Source: Lepidodermella squamata
Lineage: Eukaryota; Animalia; Gastrotricha
Direction of reading: 5' to 3'
NCBI GenBank assembly: GCA_047495785.1
Contig: JBLDXI010000020.1
Span: 1,612,001-1,676,000, forward strand
Length of the DNA: 64,000 nt
Position numbers and translations under genes: made by a program. Each line of letters starts with the position of its first letter. The first letter of the stretch is position 1. This document shows, piece after piece, positions 3,748 to 28,014 of this stretch. Below the pieces are notes generated by a model that was not told where the DNA came from, ran no database searches, and worked only from the letters and a program-made list of their open reading frames with translations.

Positions 3748-6700
3748 TCAGGACGAGAGGAATCCCCACAGCTCGACAACCTCGATAGTGAAGTCTTCGG
3801 TAGCCGTGAGCAGGTCGTTGTCGAAGGTGGCGCAGCGCTGCGTGCGGCCGCGGTACAGGTCCGAGTCGAGCCACAGGCCGTTGACGCCGTTCGAGGAGCC
3901 GAACATGAGCGACTCACGGTTGCCGCGGATGAAGAACGTGTTGTCGCCAGACCAGCGAAAGACATGGAAAGTCGGGAAGAAGGAGAAGAGGCAGCATTCA
4001 GAACTTCCGTAGAAGTGGTCCGACACGCGCAGCCGGCACGAAGACACTGCCCCGAAAACGGCGCCCGATAGGTCGTGCACGACGAGCAGCTGCGGCGAGT
4101 CCGCGTTCTGCGCCGCCCGGAACAGCGTCGACAGCGAGAAGCCGTCGCTCGCCGAGCTGTACAGCAACGTCCACGTTGTACCGATGCAGATGGGAGGTAG
4201 AATGGTACATAACTCACGGACGTAGTCGTCGGAAAGCACGGTCGATTTTCCCTAAGAAAAACATCACAAAATACAGAAAAAGCTCTTACTTTTGTTTGGC
4301 AAAAACCATGTTTTTGGGGGAGAGGTAAGTCAGAAAAAAATCTTTAAAAATTGAAATTTGTGGAGGGGGCCGATTTCCAACTGCTGTAAGAAATGGGGAA
4401 TTTTCATAATTTTTTTTATTAATTTTATGGATAATTTGGAAACTCATTAGATTTATCAGTTGTTTAAATAAATTTTTTTATTATTTGCTAGCAAAAATAT
4501 CCGAATTGAGCGCGATTTCAGTGTCCCGGATGAAAGATCCAAATTAAGGTTAGAAAGCCCTAAATAGATGATGAAATTGAAATTAAAGATTAAATTGGGT
4601 GCCAACTTTCATACATCAAAAAGGGCCCAAAAATCAAGCTTCGTAGAAACCCGAAACTCGGACTACCCTAACCCTAACCTTAATCCTGAACCCTAACCCC
4701 AACCCGAACCCCAACCCTGGCACCTAACCCTAACCCCTACCCCAATTCCTAATCACAGTTTGGCTAAAAAACACGATTTTATGAAAAAAAATATGTATGA
4801 AAGTTAATTTTGTCATACATAAATATGTATGAAATTGCACTTCGAATTGAATTTTGAAAAATACCAAATTATTCGCCTCAAAATCGAATTTTGAAAAATT
4901 ATATTTTTCCAAAATTGACGGTAAAAAACCCCAAAATATTGAGTCCGAAAATGTTCGCTCTTACTTATTCAATTTGTTAAAAATTAGGTATATTTCAAAA
5001 TCCCTTTAATTTGGTACCGCTAAATAGCTCGTCTTTCATACTATCAGGTGATTTCAATAGAAATTTTTTAACCTTCCTAGATGCGCCAAGAAAGGTGGAA
5101 AAAGTAGGTTGTCCTAACTTGACCGCTGTTACTCAAAAAAAGAGAAATTCTCAAGACAATTACCTGCATTTCTGGTAGGGGCAGGCTCCGCCTGATTTCA
5201 GCGTCTTCCGCCTGATTGCGTTTCACCGACTCGTCGATAGATATAACTTCCCATTCTTTGTACGTCGATTCAACAAGGCCGTCCGGTAACCGCTGCACGT
5301 TGTCCGATGGCCGGAAGCCGACAACGCGAGCCTTGTGCGCCGAGTGGGAAACCGCGTTCGGATTGCTGCCGTGCATTCCGGCCATTTCCGGGTTCCAATG
5401 CGTGAAAAACAGCTGCAGGCCGCGGGCGCATTTCGCAGGCACCCGGAACCAGTACTCCGGGTTGGCCGGGCAAGGCGAACCGCCGATTCCGAGAGCAGCT
5501 AGCGATTCGTCGTTCAACAACGACGAGCCGCCAATTCGAAGAAAGAGACTGGTAGGAGCAGCCGGGTCACTGAGATGAACTTCACCCGTCTGCAGCGATA
5601 AAGCTGGAGGGGAAAATGACAAAAAATCACGATTAGCCAATCATGGACAGATATTTGAACACGGGTAAGAAGGGTTCAATGGAAACTACTGTGTGTCTCG
5701 TGCTAGGCAGCTTTAAAAGATTTCAAAAGTCCACACTTCAGGCGTGTACTCGTTTCGAAGAAAGGGTTAGCGTTCTCTCAAAACGTAGGGCACAAATATC
5801 AGAGGTAAAACTTCTTTTATTTACGAGATTTGGCTGGAATTTCAGAAGAAATAAGAAAAACCAAAATTAAATCAAACTTGATAAAGGAAAAAATATTTCG
5901 AAATTTTGAAAATACTAGACAAATTTAACGGGGTTCTTATGTAAGACAACAATAAACAACATTTTCATGGTGCCTTTTATGTTACTGAATATTTTTTGTC
6001 CTGGGTGTAACTATTGAAACGATACGTCAAGCGTTACGCAGCATGCGAAATTTTAATCTAAATTTCAGAGTTTAAAGAGAATAATTTTCACTACGTCTAC
6101 TACAGAGAATAAATATCAAGATGATATAAGGTGCATGCAGGACGGCAGCTAGCTAGGGTGACTTCACTGCGGGTTCCGATTACATCAAAGCCGAGCAGTA
6201 GCAAACAGACCTCGCTTCAGGCTGGAGGTAAAACGCCGGGTTGGTTTTGTAAGCGGGACAGCATCGGTCAATTCTGTGATTAGTAGTGAACACCAATAGC
6301 GATGCCAGCAAAAGAGAGGAAAAAAAGCGGCAGCGGGATGAGGAATTTTCATTTTATTAAGAAAGTTCAAGGCGTTAGTTACGTTTAAAAGCGTAGCAAA
6401 TCGCGGTATGAAAATTATGGAATTATGTGAATTCACTCGGGTGATGGATGGGCTCGTCATGCGGTATAAAGTGGCATATAGCCCAACTTACTTTCCACTG
6501 ATTGCGATATCGAAGGTTCAACTTTTGCCAAAGTGCTGAGGCTGATTCGCTTCAAAGGCGTGCCGATGGCGCCGGCTAGTTGCGATGACATCTAGCGAAG
6601 AAAAATCCAAAATATTATTCAAAATCGAACATTTTAGCATGAAGCATGTAAATAATCGAATAAACCGTGATTGGTCAAGGTAACTTCGGACACTTGAAAC

Positions 6701-18771: not shown

Positions 18772-21700
18772 ATGACCACGTGCACCATTGAGGATTTCGT
18801 CAAGGTCTTGCATCAACTGCTGAATCCTGAGAATGAAGAGCGTGTTAAAGCTGAGGTAAGTCTTGATCAAGTTTCAAAAGTTGTCATTCAATTGTATTCA
18901 TTTTTAAGCAATGGTACGATCAAATTGCCGCTCTTCACCGTTTGGAACTGCTGTTTCAAGTAATTTCTCAGCGCACTCTTCCGGCCGAGGTATTTTCCAC
19001 TTAAAGCTCTGCCTAAAAACGACAGAATGAACTCTTTCTTTCTGTATAGCTAAGATCACTGGCGATGGTGCTTAGCAGAAAGCTTCTTATGGGGTCATTT
19101 GAGCAGCTATTCCCTGCTGGGGTGACTGATCCAGCCACCGAACCATTTAAAAGGCAGCTTCTGGTTCTAGTTGTCGCTGAGGAGGATGTGCAGATGTCAC
19201 GAAAACTTGGCGAAATTGTTGCAGAATTGGCTCGTCAGCTGAAAGGTATGAATGCCCCTTGAATGATAGACTCGAGTTGAGCAATTGGGTTTCAGATGAT
19301 AATGGCGTTTCTTTGTGGCCGGAGGCCCTCAAATTTTTGTTTGACGCTGTAACCTCCATTCAACCACATCTCAAAAGGACAGCTCTGCACATAATAGGGT
19401 TTGTTTTATTATTATTTCGCAAAAATCTTTCTTTACTGGTATGATTTCATAGACAACACCCGGGAATTTTCGGTAGCCAACAGTCTCATTACATCGGGGT
19501 GATCCGTGATGTCTTCATGCAATGCCTTCGCGATCAGGATGCTCTTGTTCGCAACGAAGCAGTGACTTGTGTTGCATCTTTCCTTGACCATAACTCCGGT
19601 CAAGATGACGTCGTCATGGCCTTGCGAGACTCAGCTCCTCATTTGCTGCAAGTCGTTGCCGAGTCAGCCAACACTTGTGATGATGACACGGCTCTCAAAT
19701 GCTTAATTGATCTTGCTGACAAAGTTCCACAGTATCTTCGGCCGCAGTTGGATAATATCGTTGTGTTTTGTTTGAAGGTAAATACAATTTGAGCGTTCAT
19801 TTCATTGAAAATTCATTCTTTTTATTTTAGCTGGCTGGAACTGCTGATGCTGATGATAGCTGGAAGCACATGGCTTTGGAGGTTGTTGTCACATTAGCTG
19901 AATCTGCTTCTGCAATGTTCAGGAAGCTTTGCACCCGCCACATTCCGGCTATTGTTTCGCGTTTGTTAGAGTTCATGTGCGATGTTGAAGAAGAGGAGGA
20001 CTGGGCTTTCAGAGACACAGCTGAAAATGAAGAGCAAGATCAAGATTCGAACCCTTTCTTCGGCGAAACGAGCTTGGACCGTCTCGCCATTGGTCTGGGT
20101 GGTCGTGCTTTAATTGCTACGTTGTTGCAACATTGGCAACAGATGTTGGCTGATGCTAGATGGCAAGCTCGCCACGCAGCTTTAATGGCTATTTCGGCTT
20201 GCGGTGAGGGTTGCCGCAAGCAGATGGAACCTATTTTGGACCAGTTGGTCAGTGCAATTTTGCCTTTCTTGGCAGATTCGCATCCTCGCGTTCGTTACGC
20301 ATCTTGTAACGCATTGGGCCAAATGTCGACGGATTTCGGCCCGCTCTTCCAGAAGAAGTTCCACGACAAGGTCATTCCTGGTCTCTTGTCCGTTATGGAC
20401 GACTATGCTCATCCTCGTGTTCAGGCTCACGGAGGCGCTGCTTTGGTCAATTTCAGCGAGGAATGCCCACCGTCGTTGATGACCCCTTACCTCGACATGA
20501 TTATCGCTAAACTCGAGGCAGTTCTTCAAGCGAAATTCCACGAATTGATGGAACGTGGCAATAAACTTGTCTTGGAACAAGTTGTAACCACCTTGGCTGC
20601 TGTTGCTGATTCTGCCGAAGAGCGTTTCGCTAATTACTATGACCGCTTCATGCCTTGTTTGAAATACATTCTTCAGAATGCGACCAGCCCTCAATTGCGT
20701 CTACTTCGCGGTAAAACAATCGAGTGTGTCAGCTTAATCGGCCTGGCGGTTGGTAAGGAGAAGTTCGCCCCTGACTGTATGGAGGTCATGCAGGTCCTAC
20801 TACAGGCTCAAAACGCGCCTGCTGACGGGGCTACCCCCGATGCGGCAGCTGCTGCTGCTGCGGCCGGGCCTGGTGAATTATCAGTCGATGATCCTCAATT
20901 GGCTTACATGATTTCGGCCTGGGCTAGGATGTGCCGGATTTTGGGCAAAGATTTCTGCCCGTATTTGCCCATTGTTATGCCGTCGCTGCTCCGTTTAGCT
21001 GCCATGAAACCTGACGTGGCTATTTTGAGCCAGGACGAAGCTAAGGAGCTGCTAACCGACGACGAATGGCAGGTCGTTAATCTCGGAGACCAGCAAAACG
21101 TCGGAATCAAGACAACCGGTCTTGAGGAGAAAGCCCAGGCCTGTAACATGCTAGTCTGTTACGCCCGTGAGTTGGGTGACGGCTTTATCGAATACGTCGA
21201 GCGCGTTGCTCGCATTATGGTGCAGCACCTGAAGTTCTACTTCCACGAAGGCGTGCGAACTGCCGCAGCCGAATCGCTGCCGTGCTTACTCGAATCGGCT
21301 CAGAGCCGAGGCCACGAATTATCTAGCGCTTTATGGCAATTTGCAGCCCAACCCCTACTGGCAGCTATTGATTGCGAAATGGTTAGTTGATGCGGGAATA
21401 TTTTTGCTAAAAACTGCCACGGGCCTGGAATTTTCGTAGACGATACCTATTTTGGTCAGTTTTTAAGCTGGAATTTTTCAATTTTAGGAATTATCGGTTC
21501 TGGCTGTTCAACTGGGCGCGTTGGCCGAATGCATCGAAACTATGGGCCGTGGTTCGCTGAGCCATGACCAGCTCACCACTCTGTCGGCTTTGTTGGGTAA
21601 AATTGTCGACGAACATATGGAAAGGCAAGCCGATCGTCAGCAACAGCGTACCGGCGAAGATTATGATGAGGCCGTTGAAGAAAATCTTCAGGTGAGTTAC

Positions 21701-22568
21701 AAATCCAATCTACCTTAAACATTTTAACAAGTGATTCTTCTCAATACAGGAAGAAGATGAAGATGACGTTCATGTCTTAAGCAAAGTTTCCGATGTGATT
21801 CACTCACTTTTCTACGTGTACGGCGTTGAATATCTGCAATATTTTGAACAATTGGCGCCCAAGTTCTCGCAACTCCTTTCCCCCACCCAACCGTGGGCGG
21901 ATCGCCAGTGGTCAATTTGCGTTTTCGATGACGTTGTCGAGTACGCGAGCCCTCAATCTGCCGCTTACCTCCCACTTTTCGGCGTTCGCCTTGTCGAATG
22001 CATCGTCGACGCGCAGCCGGAAGTTCGCCAGGCTGCTGCGTATGGTATCGGCATTCTCGCGCGATACGGCGGCCAGGACAGCGCGACGACTCAGCTGATC
22101 ACAAACGCGGTCCCACTGCTCGTTCGCTGCATCAACGAGCCGAACTCGCGCCAGCCCGAGGTCGTTAGCGCGACTGAGAACTGCATCTCCGCAGTAATGA
22201 AAATCATCCGTTATCGCAACTATGACGTGGCAAATCTACTTCCGGTGTGGTTCTCATGGCTGCCGATCTGGGACGACCAGGACGAGTGCGAAAATAACTA
22301 CGACTACCTGTGCGAGCTGGTCGAGGGCAACAACGCCGTGATTTTGGGTGCTGAAAACGCTAATTTGCCTCGCGTTGTTTCGATCATGGCCGACGCGTTG
22401 GAGCGCGAATCGATTCTGCCGATCGGATCGACGGCTCGGCGCATTGTCGGGCTGCTAACCCAGCTACGCTCGTCCGCCGAAATGCTGTTCAACTTCTGCA
22501 TGAGCCAGCTGTCGCCAACTCAAGCTCAGGCGGTTCTAACGGCGCTTTCAAACCCGCCTCCCCAATAA
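18772..22568 (+). CDS. IPO5: Importin-5 (karyopherin beta-3)
   Basis: Multi-exon HEAT-repeat protein; LDRLAIGLGG, HPRVRYASCNALGQMSTDF, HPRVQAHGGAALVNFSEECP, LRLLRGKTIECVSLIGLAVGKEKF, ISAWARMCRILG, LKFYFHEGVR, EVRQAAAYGIG, ATENCISAV. Confidence 0.97.
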
Positions 22569-23169: not shown

Positions 23170-25170
23170 TTACACAACTTCGCCGGCATTCATAATTCGC
23201 AGTGGGTTACGCAAACTCTCAGCAGTAATATTTCGAATGATAACATCCTTGAAAAACAGTTTTTCTATCGAGTTGTTCCTGCTAGTTTTTAAATGGCTCC
23301 TATCAAGAACCAGATCGATCTCGTAGATCAAGTGCAGGCTTCCATCTGCGGATCGAAAAACTGATATGTCCGATTTGAGATTGCGCCAAGATTTTCGCTT
23401 CATCGTCAGCTCATCATCGGCCTGATTTCTGCGATATACGACGTAATCAGCGGATGCTTTTACAGAGTTATCATTTTCGATTGAGATCGTTATTTCAGCT
23501 CTATCTTCATTTGTTTCAAAATCGTCTTCATTCGACTCGTGGGCCCCGAAGCGACCTTTGTGTTGACCGATTTCCCGCTCATCATCATCGCCGTCAGTCG
23601 AACTTGGGCAAACTTCGTCCGAAATGATAGCTATTACCCGGTATATATCCATAATCAGAACGATTCCGTTTTTCACAGCGAAAAAAATGTTCGCGAAAGT
23701 GATGATCTTTTTTTCGAAGATGAAAAACATGCGAATTATGAAGAAGGGGCCATCCTTGGAACGATTCGTGGTTAGGGAAAAGTTAATATTAAATTGCATT
23801 ACTCACTTGAAGGGCAATAGTAAAAACCATAGCCCAAACCTCATTGGTGAAGCAAAAACAGCTGAATTTGATGAACCTTCGCTTTGCAGCAGGACAATCG
23901 GGATCGATATCCACGAATCGGCTATGTCGAGCAAGAGTTGCTATCAATCAAAATATCGCTGTAATGTCCTGATTCGAGGCACGTTAACTCACCGGTGTAA
24001 TTGACAGCGAACTGTACATGGGATAAGGAATAGAGAATCAGAACTGCGACGACGTAGTCGAAAACATTTCCGACCCCTACGTACATGAGCGAATCGATTA
24101 TGTCCAGAATATCTGTTGCCTGTTAAAAGATACCCAATCGATGCTTTGTCACTCATATTTTGATGTCATTACCATCGCGACGTAAATTAGAAGCAGTTGA
24201 GACAGTTGGTCCCGAGTCATTGCACCTTTTGGAAATAGCCACTGTTTTAATATAGAATAAAAATAGTCAGTCCAGGTTTTATTCAAGTCTACGTTACTTA
24301 CCTTAGAAAATATGAGCATTATAAAGAATAATTGCTCCATTATTCTGGCCCACTCGAATTCGGTGAATTCGACACCACCGAAATCAAACTATTAACGTCA
24401 GAAGGATGAAATGAGCGTAAAATTCTTCATCTCCCATCTCACGTTAGATATCGTTCCGAATCTTTGGGGCTCAAATACATCCAGTTGCTCGAAGCTCGTC
24501 GTATTTGGGTTGTTTCTGATTCCTAGCCACTTCAATGTATACCTTTAATAATTTTCTAGTGAAATTTTTGAGAATTTTAGGGTGAGTTTGAACTTACAGG
24601 TGAATTTCGATCATCCAAATCGATGCCAAGCTGGAAAGGACGAATATTCCCATTGCTGGCGAACACCTGAAATAATTCATACTGTAATTTTAATAAATAA
24701 GGCTTGAAAGTTATGGGCACCAACCATTTATATTCGTGGCCAGAGTTAAGGAACCAGGTAACCAAAAATTCAGGTATGAATAGCGCGATCCTACAAAAAA
24801 GTTTGTACTTAAGCCCTCTTTTCAAGGTTTAAAACTAACCCAATCATCGGAGTCCAGTAGCAGAATGGCTCCAACTTCTTGACCCCGCTACCTTCTGTTG
24901 AAAGCTGTTGAGAAGTCGATGAGGAGTTGGAATCAGTAGATGCTTCGAACGAAAACCCAGTTGAATCGACTGAAATATGCCCACCATTGACACCAGCAGC
25001 GCGCCATGTCAAAACAAAAATTGTCTGAAAAATTTGGATACAAACGCTAAATTTTGTTACAAAATCTCGAAGCTTACCAAGGACATCAAAATGCGAACAA
25101 ATATGGCTTTGATTAGATCGTAAAACTTGGAGAAGCATCCAGCACAAGTTCCTTGAAAACTGCTAACCAT
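23170..25170 (-). CDS. TMEM26-like multi-pass membrane protein, paralogue A (10 exons)
   Basis: Starts MVSSFQG...DLIKAIFVRILMSL; family motifs WLFPKGAMTRDQLSQLLLIYVAMATDILD, SHVQF, QDGPFFIIRM...IFFAVKNGIVLIMDIYRV. Confidence 0.85.
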
Positions 25171-25540
25171 TTCAAATGGTTATCGAATCTAATACGTTTG
25201 CTAGTAGGTATTGGCTCATGATTCGCGAAGCTATTTTAAACGTTCAATCAACGATTCAGCTTCATTCAATATTTATGCGTCGATACTTTCATGTTGTTGG
25301 CAACTGATTACGCGTTCTGTTCATCAACCTTGATGGTGCGTGGCTAGGCCGTTGTCACCATCAATTCGTAAATATTCTGCCCATTTCCAGACGCTATCTG
25401 ATTTATTCATTTTTTAAAAGCCAATGGGATATAAACGAAACAAAATTGTGTATTTTTTGCTTTGGCATTGCGGAAAATTGTGAATATTCAATAAAAATCC
25501 AGAAAAATCATAAAAAAAACCAGGTGAAGCAGAGAATTCT

Positions 25541-28014
25541 CTAATGTTCATCAACTCTAGCTAAATCTATCCAGCCTTCGTCTTCAGGTATAGCTTTAGG
25601 TTTCGGCTTGGGTTTCTTTTCTCGTTCTTGGTCGTCGTCTTTAGTCACTCTGCTAGGTTTTATTGAGGATTCCGCCGCTCGCGATGAAGTGCTAGTCATT
25701 GTGTTTACCACAGCAGTTGCTCGTGTCACAGGTTGAAGCATAGAAGGCCTAGCTCGAGTTGAAACTGGAGCGGGAGCAGGAGCAGGGACTCTAGCCGTTT
25801 CGCCCCTAGAGTTTACTGAAACGGTACGGGCAACAGGGACTCTCGGTGTAGGGTCAGCCTGAAGAGCTATCGAATTTGCCTGAGCCTGAGAGACAGCTAC
25901 AGGTCCGATTTGGTTGACTGCTCTTCTTCTAAGAACAGCATTTTCAAGTCTATCACCCCCTGCTGTCATGCTTTCCGGCTTTTTGACAACCATATTTCGA
26001 ATACGCACCTGTAAACTCAATTCGAAGTTGGTTTTCGCGTAAAAGATGACGAAAATTTACGTCTTTCATTATCAGAGATTTCTCCAGGCCTCCAACACTA
26101 ATAGACGTACCATTATCAGGTGAAATTGACACGGCCTTTTCGTCCAAAACCAAGTCGACCTCGTAAAAAAGGTGGAGATCATCGTCATTCTCAAATGGCG
26201 ATGCCTCAGACTGCAAACTGCGCCACTGCTTCCGTTTCCAGCAATCTTCATCTGTGTCCGGGAAGGGCTTGAAAGCGTACTCAGCCATTGCCTTGACAAC
26301 GCTATTCAAACTGATGTTCAGGCTGATTTCCGCCCTATTAGGTTTTTCGTCATCTTCATCATCACTGGCGTTGTTAGGGTCTGCACGGCGGTGTCCGCCT
26401 GTTGAGTTGTTTATCACAATTTCTTCCGTGTCCGCCTTCCCCGACATTGCCCGGTGGGCGGCCTCATCTATAATTATCGTTATGACGCGATAAAAGTCGA
26501 TGGTTAAGACGATCGCGTTTTTGACCGTGAAGAATATGTTCCCGAATGTGATTATGCGCAAGCCGAAGATGAAGTACAGTCGAACGATAAAGAAAGGACC
26601 GTCCTTCGCATAAGCAAGGTAAGATTCAAGTTACAAACAGACATTCCTTTTAGCAGAGCGCTTACTTGCAAGGTAATCGTTAGCAGCATCGCCCACATAT
26701 CGCTGAAGAAGCAGAAACAGGCGGCTTTTTTGAACTTCAGGTCAAAATTTTGCCACTTGATTACTTATTTCTTGTTTTAGCCACTCTTTCAAACCTTATT
26801 TTCTTCCGATCGATGGTCTACGGCTATTCGAGCTGGTCTAGATAATGTTGCCGTTGTATTCAGAGTAAATTGAAGATGGGCACACGAATAAAGCATCTGA
26901 AAGTGATAAAAGTTTATTTAGGATGAAAGCTGAATGATGAACATGCTAACCAACCATTACTAAAATGACGTAGGCCAAATTATTGCCGATGCCAACGTAC
27001 ATCAGAGCGTCAATCATGTCCAGAATATCGGTACCCATTGCGATGTAGACTAGCAAAAGTTGGGACAGTTGAGCTCGAGTCATCACGCCTTTTGGTGACA
27101 TCCATTTCGAGATGACAATTGTAATGAAAAAAAATTGCTCAGCAATTCTAGCCCAATCTGTCGGCCGCAATTCAATCCCACCGAAATTAAACTGAAACTA
27201 AAGGGATTAGAAAAGCTGAAAAAGGTTGGCTGGATTTACCCCGGAGAGTGTTCCGTAGGTTTCGTACTCGAAAATATCGTCAACCTCTTCGAAACTGGAG
27301 GCATTCGGGCGTATAGCGATAGCGTTCCACTTTAAAACGTACAAATCGATTTCGATAATCCAAATAGACATCAATACAGAGGCGACGTAAATAGCCATGG
27401 CAGGGGACCACCTTGACAAAAGAATAAAATTTCACAGACAAATCTAGTCAAATCCTTACCATTTATACTCCTGACCCTTGTTGATGAACCATGAGACAAA
27501 AAATTCAGGGATATATAAAAATATTCTGAAATCTGAATTTTGAGGCATCGATGCAGGGCTTCTAATTAAAATTAGTTACCCCAAAGCTGGCATCCAATAC
27601 ACATACCTGAAAGAATATTGAAATAATTCAGCATTATATAGGTAATTAATTAAAATGCTTCATTTATACCAGGGTTCTTGGGCTACTCCTCCATTGCTTA
27701 TAATACGGCTTGTATTGCTGTGATAACGTCCTTCAGCCAACTCGTACTTGAAATCATCAGCTGAAGTTGGAAAGTTGGATCCATTAACAGCTGCAGCTCG
27801 AAGAGTGATCGCAAAAATAGTCTGTAGGATCGCAAAAATTATTGACAAAATTGTACCAATTTATTCAACCAACCAGTGATAGGATCAATCTGGTGATTAC
27901 GGCCTTGATTAGATCAAAAAATCGTTTCCAGAATTGACTGCAGGCTGCCTTGAAGCGCTTCAGCGCTGCCTTTGATTTGACTTCATTATGATTGGCGTTA
28001 TTCTCTGACAACAT
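25541..28014 (-). CDS. TMEM26-like multi-pass membrane protein, paralogue B (10 exons) with long low-complexity tail
   Basis: Starts MLSENNAN...DLIKAVITRLILSL; WMSPKGVMTRAQLSQLLLVYIAMGTDILD, QDGPFFIVRL...IFFTVKNAIVLTIDFYRV; intron 26060-26009 joins the two overlapping ORFs (KD|VRIRN). Confidence 0.85.

Follow-up and report, generated by a model that had tools for sequence, protein, structure and literature searches.

Two neighbouring genes related to transmembrane protein 26 (TMEM26), called here gene A and gene B, lie on the minus strand of a 64,000-nucleotide stretch of the genome of the gastrotrich Lepidodermella squamata (assembly GCA_047495785.1, contig JBLDXI010000020.1, positions 1,612,001 to 1,676,000; hereafter the window, in whose own numbering positions are given). 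They are tandem duplicates of one TMEM26-type gene. Each copy carries nine introns and the pair holds 13 distinct intron sites, of which five are common to both copies (S1 to S5), four occur in A only (A4, A6, A7 and A8) and four in B only (B2, B6, B7 and B9). Comparison with outgroup genes favours the gain of at least 11 of these 13 sites in the lineage of this animal, whatever the timing of the gains. From the same comparison of sequences we lean, by a small degree, towards a gain of most private introns after the duplication, independently in A and B.

Intron positions and splicing in the tandem pair

The gene models combine eight private introns, proposed in an earlier note on this DNA, with five more introns per gene placed by sequence reading. 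Open TMEM26 frames arise in A and B only when the introns of that note are removed. Exons of the resulting models match the Pfam family PF09772 with single-exon scores of 63.7, 33.1 and 28.2 bits, above the gathering cut-off of 22.2, and these matches cover the profile positions 125-192 and 247-285, which places the genes in the TMEM26 family. The two proteins share 242 identical residues, corresponding to an identity of about 48-53% (about 53% over conserved columns). All 18 introns have GT-AG ends, a length of 48-63 bp and a guanine plus cytosine (GC) content of about 32%, the exons having 43-46%; these interruptions are ordinary short U2-type spliceosomal introns.

In the pairwise alignment of A and B, the five common introns fall in identical columns with identical phases (0, 2, 2, 0 and 0), in agreement with the reciprocal turnover, five common and four private introns in each copy, described in the earlier note. 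The eight private introns were all found at the coordinates that it had given, on the minus strand, with lengths of 52-63 bp and GT-AG ends. It had also placed most of them in well-aligned sequence, and indeed the protein alignment is gapless at A4, A6, A7, A8, B6 and B9 and shows gaps of 1-3 residues beside B2 and B7; once B9 is removed, for instance, VRIRNMV of B aligns with VIIRNIT of A. Read along the gene, the 13 sites run S,B,S,S,A,S,A,A,B,A,B,S,B, so that the private sites are interleaved and only A6 and A7 are adjacent. The premise that paralogues which align this well usually keep their intron positions is weak for copies of about 48-53% identity in a compact and fast-evolving genome.

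Splicing was examined in an independent run of 2015 from the same species, RNA-like and guessed to be RNA, whose contigs are 95-100% identical to the window. Contigs of this run skip exactly B6, B7 and S5 of gene B, with GT..AG ends, which confirms three gene B junctions, and one contig of 121 nt covers the 69-nt exon between two of them from end to end. The 3' end of gene A is also covered by contigs of this run. Among the joints listed for this run (15 of 24), those in gene A all belong to fold-back contigs of the 'opposite strands' type, and the interpretable loose ends in this gene correspond to unspliced sequence of a divergent haplotype. Between 23400 and 27300, most contigs of the 2015 run are fold-back contigs with 'opposite strands' joints about 100-120 nt apart, and several of them end no more than 1-2 bases from exon boundaries (e.g. 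24120, 24667 and 23991). An artefact of the library or of the assembly, in a transcriptome made from low input, is the probable cause.

A second run, made from DNA in 2024, contains two very divergent haplotypes. It gave no joint removing any intron, and both haplotypes therefore carry all 18 introns. Within introns (24120-24301, 24667-24724 and 27412-27459) the two haplotypes differ by about 15-18%, with insertions and deletions in addition, and adjoining exons by about 3%; in A7 they are separated by 8 single-nucleotide differences and 1 insertion or deletion. Intron sequence turnover is extremely fast at this locus.

Two peculiarities of gene B were also observed. A micro-exon of 27 nt (27580-27606, YVYWMPAL) lies between B2 and S2, and its skipping would keep the frame and remove a conserved transmembrane stretch. 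The exon after B9 encodes a tail of 155 amino acids (25541-26008), rich in Pro, Ala, Ser and Thr as well as in Lys, which A does not have and for which no Pfam match was found.

Ancient and lineage-specific intron sites

When 1.84 billion representative proteins were searched with exon 6 of gene B as query, 484 TMEM26 relatives were returned at E ≤ 0.001, the named ones being 'transmembrane protein 26(-like)'. The best identity was 46%, and no orthologue of A or B from a close species was present among these proteins. Word-based protein searches gave no match for the last exon of A in its length range and, for the top match of the first search (P0001), only P0001 itself. A scan of metagenome DNA with exon 6 of B produced a single locus (L001), which was spurious.

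The outgroup proteins were mapped exactly onto genomic DNA with a custom splice mapper and their intron marks were placed on a MAFFT alignment. Eight animals with introns were compared: four molluscs (Pecten maximus, 3 introns mapped; Aplysia californica, 4; Haliotis rubra and Haliotis asinina, 2 each), the nemertean Tubulanus polymorphus (2), the millipede Chamberlinius hualienensis (2), the beetle Coccinella septempunctata (6) and the fish Lampris incognitus (2 in the TMEM26 domain, plus tail exons). The copy of the sea urchin Strongylocentrotus purpuratus (P0148) is intronless and hence uninformative. S3, which splits the W of E[YW]KW in phase 2, was found in the identical column and phase in all eight intron-bearing genes. 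S4, of phase 0 before FNFGG, occupies the identical column in two of them; in the six others it falls inside a stretch rich in gaps, no further than 2-4 columns away. For S1, S2, S5 and the eight private sites, no coinciding intron was found in the eight outgroup genes, the nearest misses being 5-9 nt off and in other phases. S3 and S4 are thus the only ancient bilaterian positions of the pair.

Conservation of ancestral intron sites is generally assumed for molluscs, nemerteans and vertebrates, and on this ground the ancestral gene would have had two introns in the TMEM26 domain followed by a long 3' exon. The polarisation with outgroups that the earlier note had called for therefore gave two ancient sites kept in both copies and no private site of ancestral origin. 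Between the high gain and the patchy loss that it had left side by side, gain is favoured, as 11 of the 13 sites are absent from the eight outgroups; loss also occurs in the wider lineage, as described below.

The nearest relative came from the top match, P0001, an open reading frame of 307 amino acids that a gene caller of prokaryotic style had predicted on an ENA metagenome scaffold of 26 kb (CAOS20-1...scaffold_1778, here L004). Read by eye, L004:5454-7327 is a complete TMEM26-like gene; its introns are short (53-64 bp) and it has the C-terminal 'LHLVYELEF' domain seen in A and B. The tree obtained was (L004,(A,B)), with a Shimodaira-Hasegawa-like approximate likelihood ratio support (SH-aLRT) of 100 at both nodes. 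The L004 gene is continuous through all five common sites and all A-only sites, and P0157, another contig from this organism, is continuous across S3 and A4. A frameshift in a T-run of L004 near 5961 is absent from P0157, which indicates an assembly slip; the scaffold also contains a 40-N gap. Introns of its own are present in this gene. One of them (6330-6386, 57 bp, phase 2 in 'TT-S-HAQF') lies between the B6 and A8 sites and is in frame and stop-free, which explains that the gene caller read through it, and a further one is located in the C-terminal domain. A third intron (5769-5821, phase 2, just before 'LLWLPCAG') falls in a stretch of low conservation, a single alignment column away from B2, and the chance of such a near-match was roughly estimated at 0.07. 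A relative without the ancient introns and yet with introns of its own indicates that loss and gain are both active in the wider clade. The features of the pair are collected in Table 1.

Table 1. Gene models and intron sites of the TMEM26-like pair, in window coordinates (L004 and P0157, nearest relative).
Feature	Coordinates	Strand	Description
Gene A, TMEM26-like	25170-23170	minus	10 coding exons, 504 amino acids; open spliced reading frame; Pfam PF09772 on exons
Gene B, TMEM26-like	28014-25541	minus	10 coding exons, 658 amino acids; open spliced reading frame; Pfam PF09772 on exons
S1	A 25025-25077, B 27822-27873	minus	phase 0, SL|TIF; lineage-specific; absent from all outgroups and L004
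S2	A 24791-24839, B 27526-27579	minus	phase 2, in G of MIG|I; lineage-specific; absent from outgroups and L004
S3	A 24667-24724, B 27412-27459	minus	phase 2, in W of EYKW; ancient bilaterian position
S4	A 24389-24442, B 27192-27239	minus	phase 0, before FDFGG in A; ancient position
S5	A 23755-23806, B 26604-26665	minus	phase 0, LQ|DGPFF; lineage-specific; absent from outgroups, L004 continuous; B copy spliced in 2015 run
A4	24543-24597	minus	55 bp, phase 2; read-through gives a stop; B, L004/P0157 and all outgroups continuous
A6	24242-24301	minus	60 bp, phase 0; in frame, stop-free; GTAAGT..ACAG ends; 28% GC
A7	24120-24172	minus	53 bp, phase 0; read-through gives a stop and frameshift
A8	23941-23992	minus	52 bp, phase 1; read-through gives a frameshift; no outgroup intron at site
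B2	27607-27669	minus	63 bp, phase 2; upstream of 27-nt exon; read-through gives a stop
B6	26897-26954	minus	58 bp, phase 0; contig of 2015 run skips exactly 58 nt; read-through gives a stop
B7	26735-26794	minus	60 bp, phase 0; contig of 2015 run skips exactly 60 nt; read-through gives stops
B9	26009-26060	minus	52 bp, phase 0, KD|V; C-terminal domain; read-through gives a frameshift

Timing and mechanism of intron gain

In the history that we prefer, the TMEM26 domain of the ancestral animal gene would have contained S3 and S4 as its two introns, both retained in A and B, and new introns would have been inserted into the long exons of this gene in the lineage leading to this animal. S1, S2 and S5 would have arrived before the duplication, and most of the eight paralogue-specific introns independently in A and B after it, with B2 possibly older and lost from A. 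This timing was compared with that of a pure-loss model, in which capture-recapture (9 x 9 / 5) gives about 16 introns at the duplication node, with a minimum of 13. The cost of such a model is about 14 earlier gains and 7-8 later losses, which have to be separate in view of the interleaved order of the private sites. Gain after the duplication needs gains only, and parsimony thus favours it for most private introns.

Several observations weigh against this timing. It is one that we infer, since the parsimony argument depends on a single near outgroup, L004/P0157. The approximately unbiased test does not reject a grouping of B with L004 (p = 0.25) and the relative has itself lost both ancient introns, S3 and S4. 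Its same-phase intron beside B2 suggests that B2 may be common to the two lineages, hence older than the duplication and lost in A. With regard to splicing, no spliced contig of gene A was present among the joints listed from the 2015 run (15 of 24), so that the check on RNA junctions proposed in the earlier note succeeded for B6, B7 and S5 of B and for no junction of A; support for the gene A model consequently comes from the reading frame, from homology and from polymorphism rather than from RNA. The absence of any mechanistic signature of gain, detailed below, points in the same direction.

A differential loss of older introns is a possible but clearly less probable origin of the pattern. 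The gene would already have carried at least 13 introns before the duplication and each copy would have lost about four of them by precise deletion, via recombination with a reverse transcript or via genomic deletion. Precise loss occurs in this clade, as L004/P0157 has lost both ancient introns and is devoid of S1, S2 and S5; moreover, B2 may be common to it, the counts of five, four and four fit an independent survival of about 0.6 per copy, and the large exons of neighbouring genes (506 amino acids in an importin gene, 1064-1124 in Calx-beta exons) are compatible with much intron loss. Such a scenario, however, requires the same 11 gains and in addition 7-8 losses, mostly non-adjacent, and under it the about 500 codons of the ancestor would have held about 13-16 introns, against 2-6 in the eight outgroup genes. 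Adjacent losses with a 3' bias, the signature of loss mediated by reverse transcripts, are not seen either, the sites being interleaved over the whole gene without 3' bias and without any run of adjacent losses except A6 and A7. Far less probable still is an artefact of annotation, in which some private 'introns' would be coding insertions or misplaced splice sites would mimic two positions, as in intron sliding. A6 could be suspected on this account, being in frame and stop-free, as could the cluster formed by B6, the L004 intron and A8 within 17 codons, and the gene A junctions were not seen among the 15 of 24 joints listed. Yet retention of seven of the eight private introns leads to a stop or a frameshift, A6 being the exception, and B6 and B7 are spliced exactly as predicted. 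In A6, 11 of 60 positions differ between the haplotypes of the 2024 run, compared with about 3% in adjoining exon sequence, which fits the expectation for non-coding DNA, as does its GC content of 28%; furthermore, the 20 extra residues that it would encode were found in no homologue in the alignment with the outgroups and L004. B6 and A8, the nearest private pair of the two copies, are 46 nt apart in a gapless and conserved alignment and differ in phase. They do not represent a single shifted intron, and intron sliding was ruled out on the same grounds.

The gapless alignment at six of the eight private introns, nearly so at the two others, indicates that no coding sequence was intronised, and intronisation of exon sequence was ruled out as the intron-bearing copy is not short of residues at the private sites. 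The gains may then be insertions of extra DNA at precise points, rather than converted coding sequence, a slid intron or a recognisable local duplication. An introner-type gain, as suggested in the earlier note, would make the private introns degraded members of a family of intron-generating transposons that is active in this genome. Precise insertion without loss of coding sequence and the aquatic life of the animal, a setting in which introners are enriched (PMC9860276), are compatible with it, but the suggestion found no support in the window and we consider it improbable. For none of the 18 introns was a match of more than 16 nt found elsewhere in the 64 kb, the longest exact run being 14 nt. 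Terminal inverted repeats amounted to 5-8 matches of 16 (all p ≥ 0.17 against shuffled controls), in line with the remark that none were evident, and the fold energies of the 18 introns were not unusual relative to such controls. Junction repeats did not exceed 5 nt. The longest, G|GTAT at B2, corresponds to the GTAT repeat at 27607-27669 which had been taken as compatible with an insertion duplication; the repeat exists but is at chance level. Local alignments of introns with their flanks stayed within shuffles, the best being that of B2 (p = 0.035, uncorrected over 18 tests), with the next intron forming part of its flank. Gain by tandem duplication of an exon segment containing AGGT was likewise rejected, since the introns do not resemble the adjoining exon sequence. 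In addition, a size of 48-63 bp is the ordinary one of introns in this genome, none of the introns is recent as both haplotypes carry all of them, and introners turned up in just two groups of animals when 3,325 eukaryotic genomes were surveyed (PMC9860276). On the preferred history, the source of the insertions (transposon, repair filler or copied intron) may have been erased by fast intron evolution and by a tight length optimum of 48-63 bp. An unrecognisable source is expected if the introns are old, given their presence in both haplotypes and the 15-18% intron divergence between them.

Intron density was also noted in the surroundings of the pair. On the minus strand, 33590-54113 contains very long open exons (up to 1124 amino acids), rich in Calx-beta domains and with very few introns in comparison with the intron-dense TMEM26 pair; this region is probably one giant FRAS/FREM- or ADGRV1-like gene. 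On the plus strand, 19870-22568 carries an importin-beta/IPO5-like gene, whose exons encode 506 and 257 amino acids. Vertebrate orthologues of the latter have far more introns, and the gene may have lost many.

Significance and comparison with known systems

The published Lepidodermella genome (122 Mb, about 3% heterozygosity) is accompanied by an adult transcriptome only, and the word 'intron' does not occur in the main text of the genome paper (PMC11660948). Full-text literature searches returned nothing on intron evolution in gastrotrichs. The locus alone shows the outcome of intron turnover, not its mechanism. Clear intron gains are rare in animals and the mechanism of gain is a long-standing open question. 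With 11 of 13 sites specific to the lineage and tandem copies that differ reciprocally, the phylum is a candidate high-turnover lineage. A genome-wide burst of intron gain in the gastrotrich lineage, comparable to that of Oikopleura, continuing after recent duplications and possibly fed by intron-generating transposons, is a speculative extension which we regard as rather unlikely. If true, Spiralia would have its first example of this kind and animals as a whole one of a very small number, and the introns of 52-63 bp would be shrunken transposon remnants. Should the pattern be confirmed genome-wide and younger gains with an intact source exist, this animal could offer a tractable system for the study of intron birth.

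Among described systems, introners (PMC9860276, PMC12130899) share with the present locus an insertion-type gain without coding loss and an aquatic host; they differ from it in that no repeated family in the 64-kb window, no terminal inverted repeats and no target-site duplications were found here, and that the introns are of ordinary length and composition. Segmental duplicates of rice (PMC1779517) also differ in the presence of introns at precise sites. In rice, however, loss predominates and the ancestral sites can be identified in outgroups, whereas the private sites of A and B are absent from the outgroups.

Intron gain specific to a paralogue or to a lineage is already a known phenomenon, and what is new here is its occurrence in an unstudied phylum. 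Gain is said to exceed loss in the paralogous gene families considered by Babenko et al. in 2004. As in the present pair, some sites are common and others differ in those families, and outgroups assign most differences to gain after duplication. Our case is limited to one tandem pair of an unstudied phylum with one near outgroup, and it is distinguished by an unusually high count, namely eight private and three common novel sites within a coding length of about 1.5 kb. An intron turnover in a compact animal genome has reportedly been described in Oikopleura dioica by Edvardsen in 2004 and Denoeud in 2010. The present observations concern one gene family only, and a spiralian rather than a tunicate. 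The resemblance to Oikopleura dioica lies in the compact genome, the near-minimal introns, the mostly lineage-specific sites and the lack of an obvious source signature, together with a close relative that has lost the ancestral introns.

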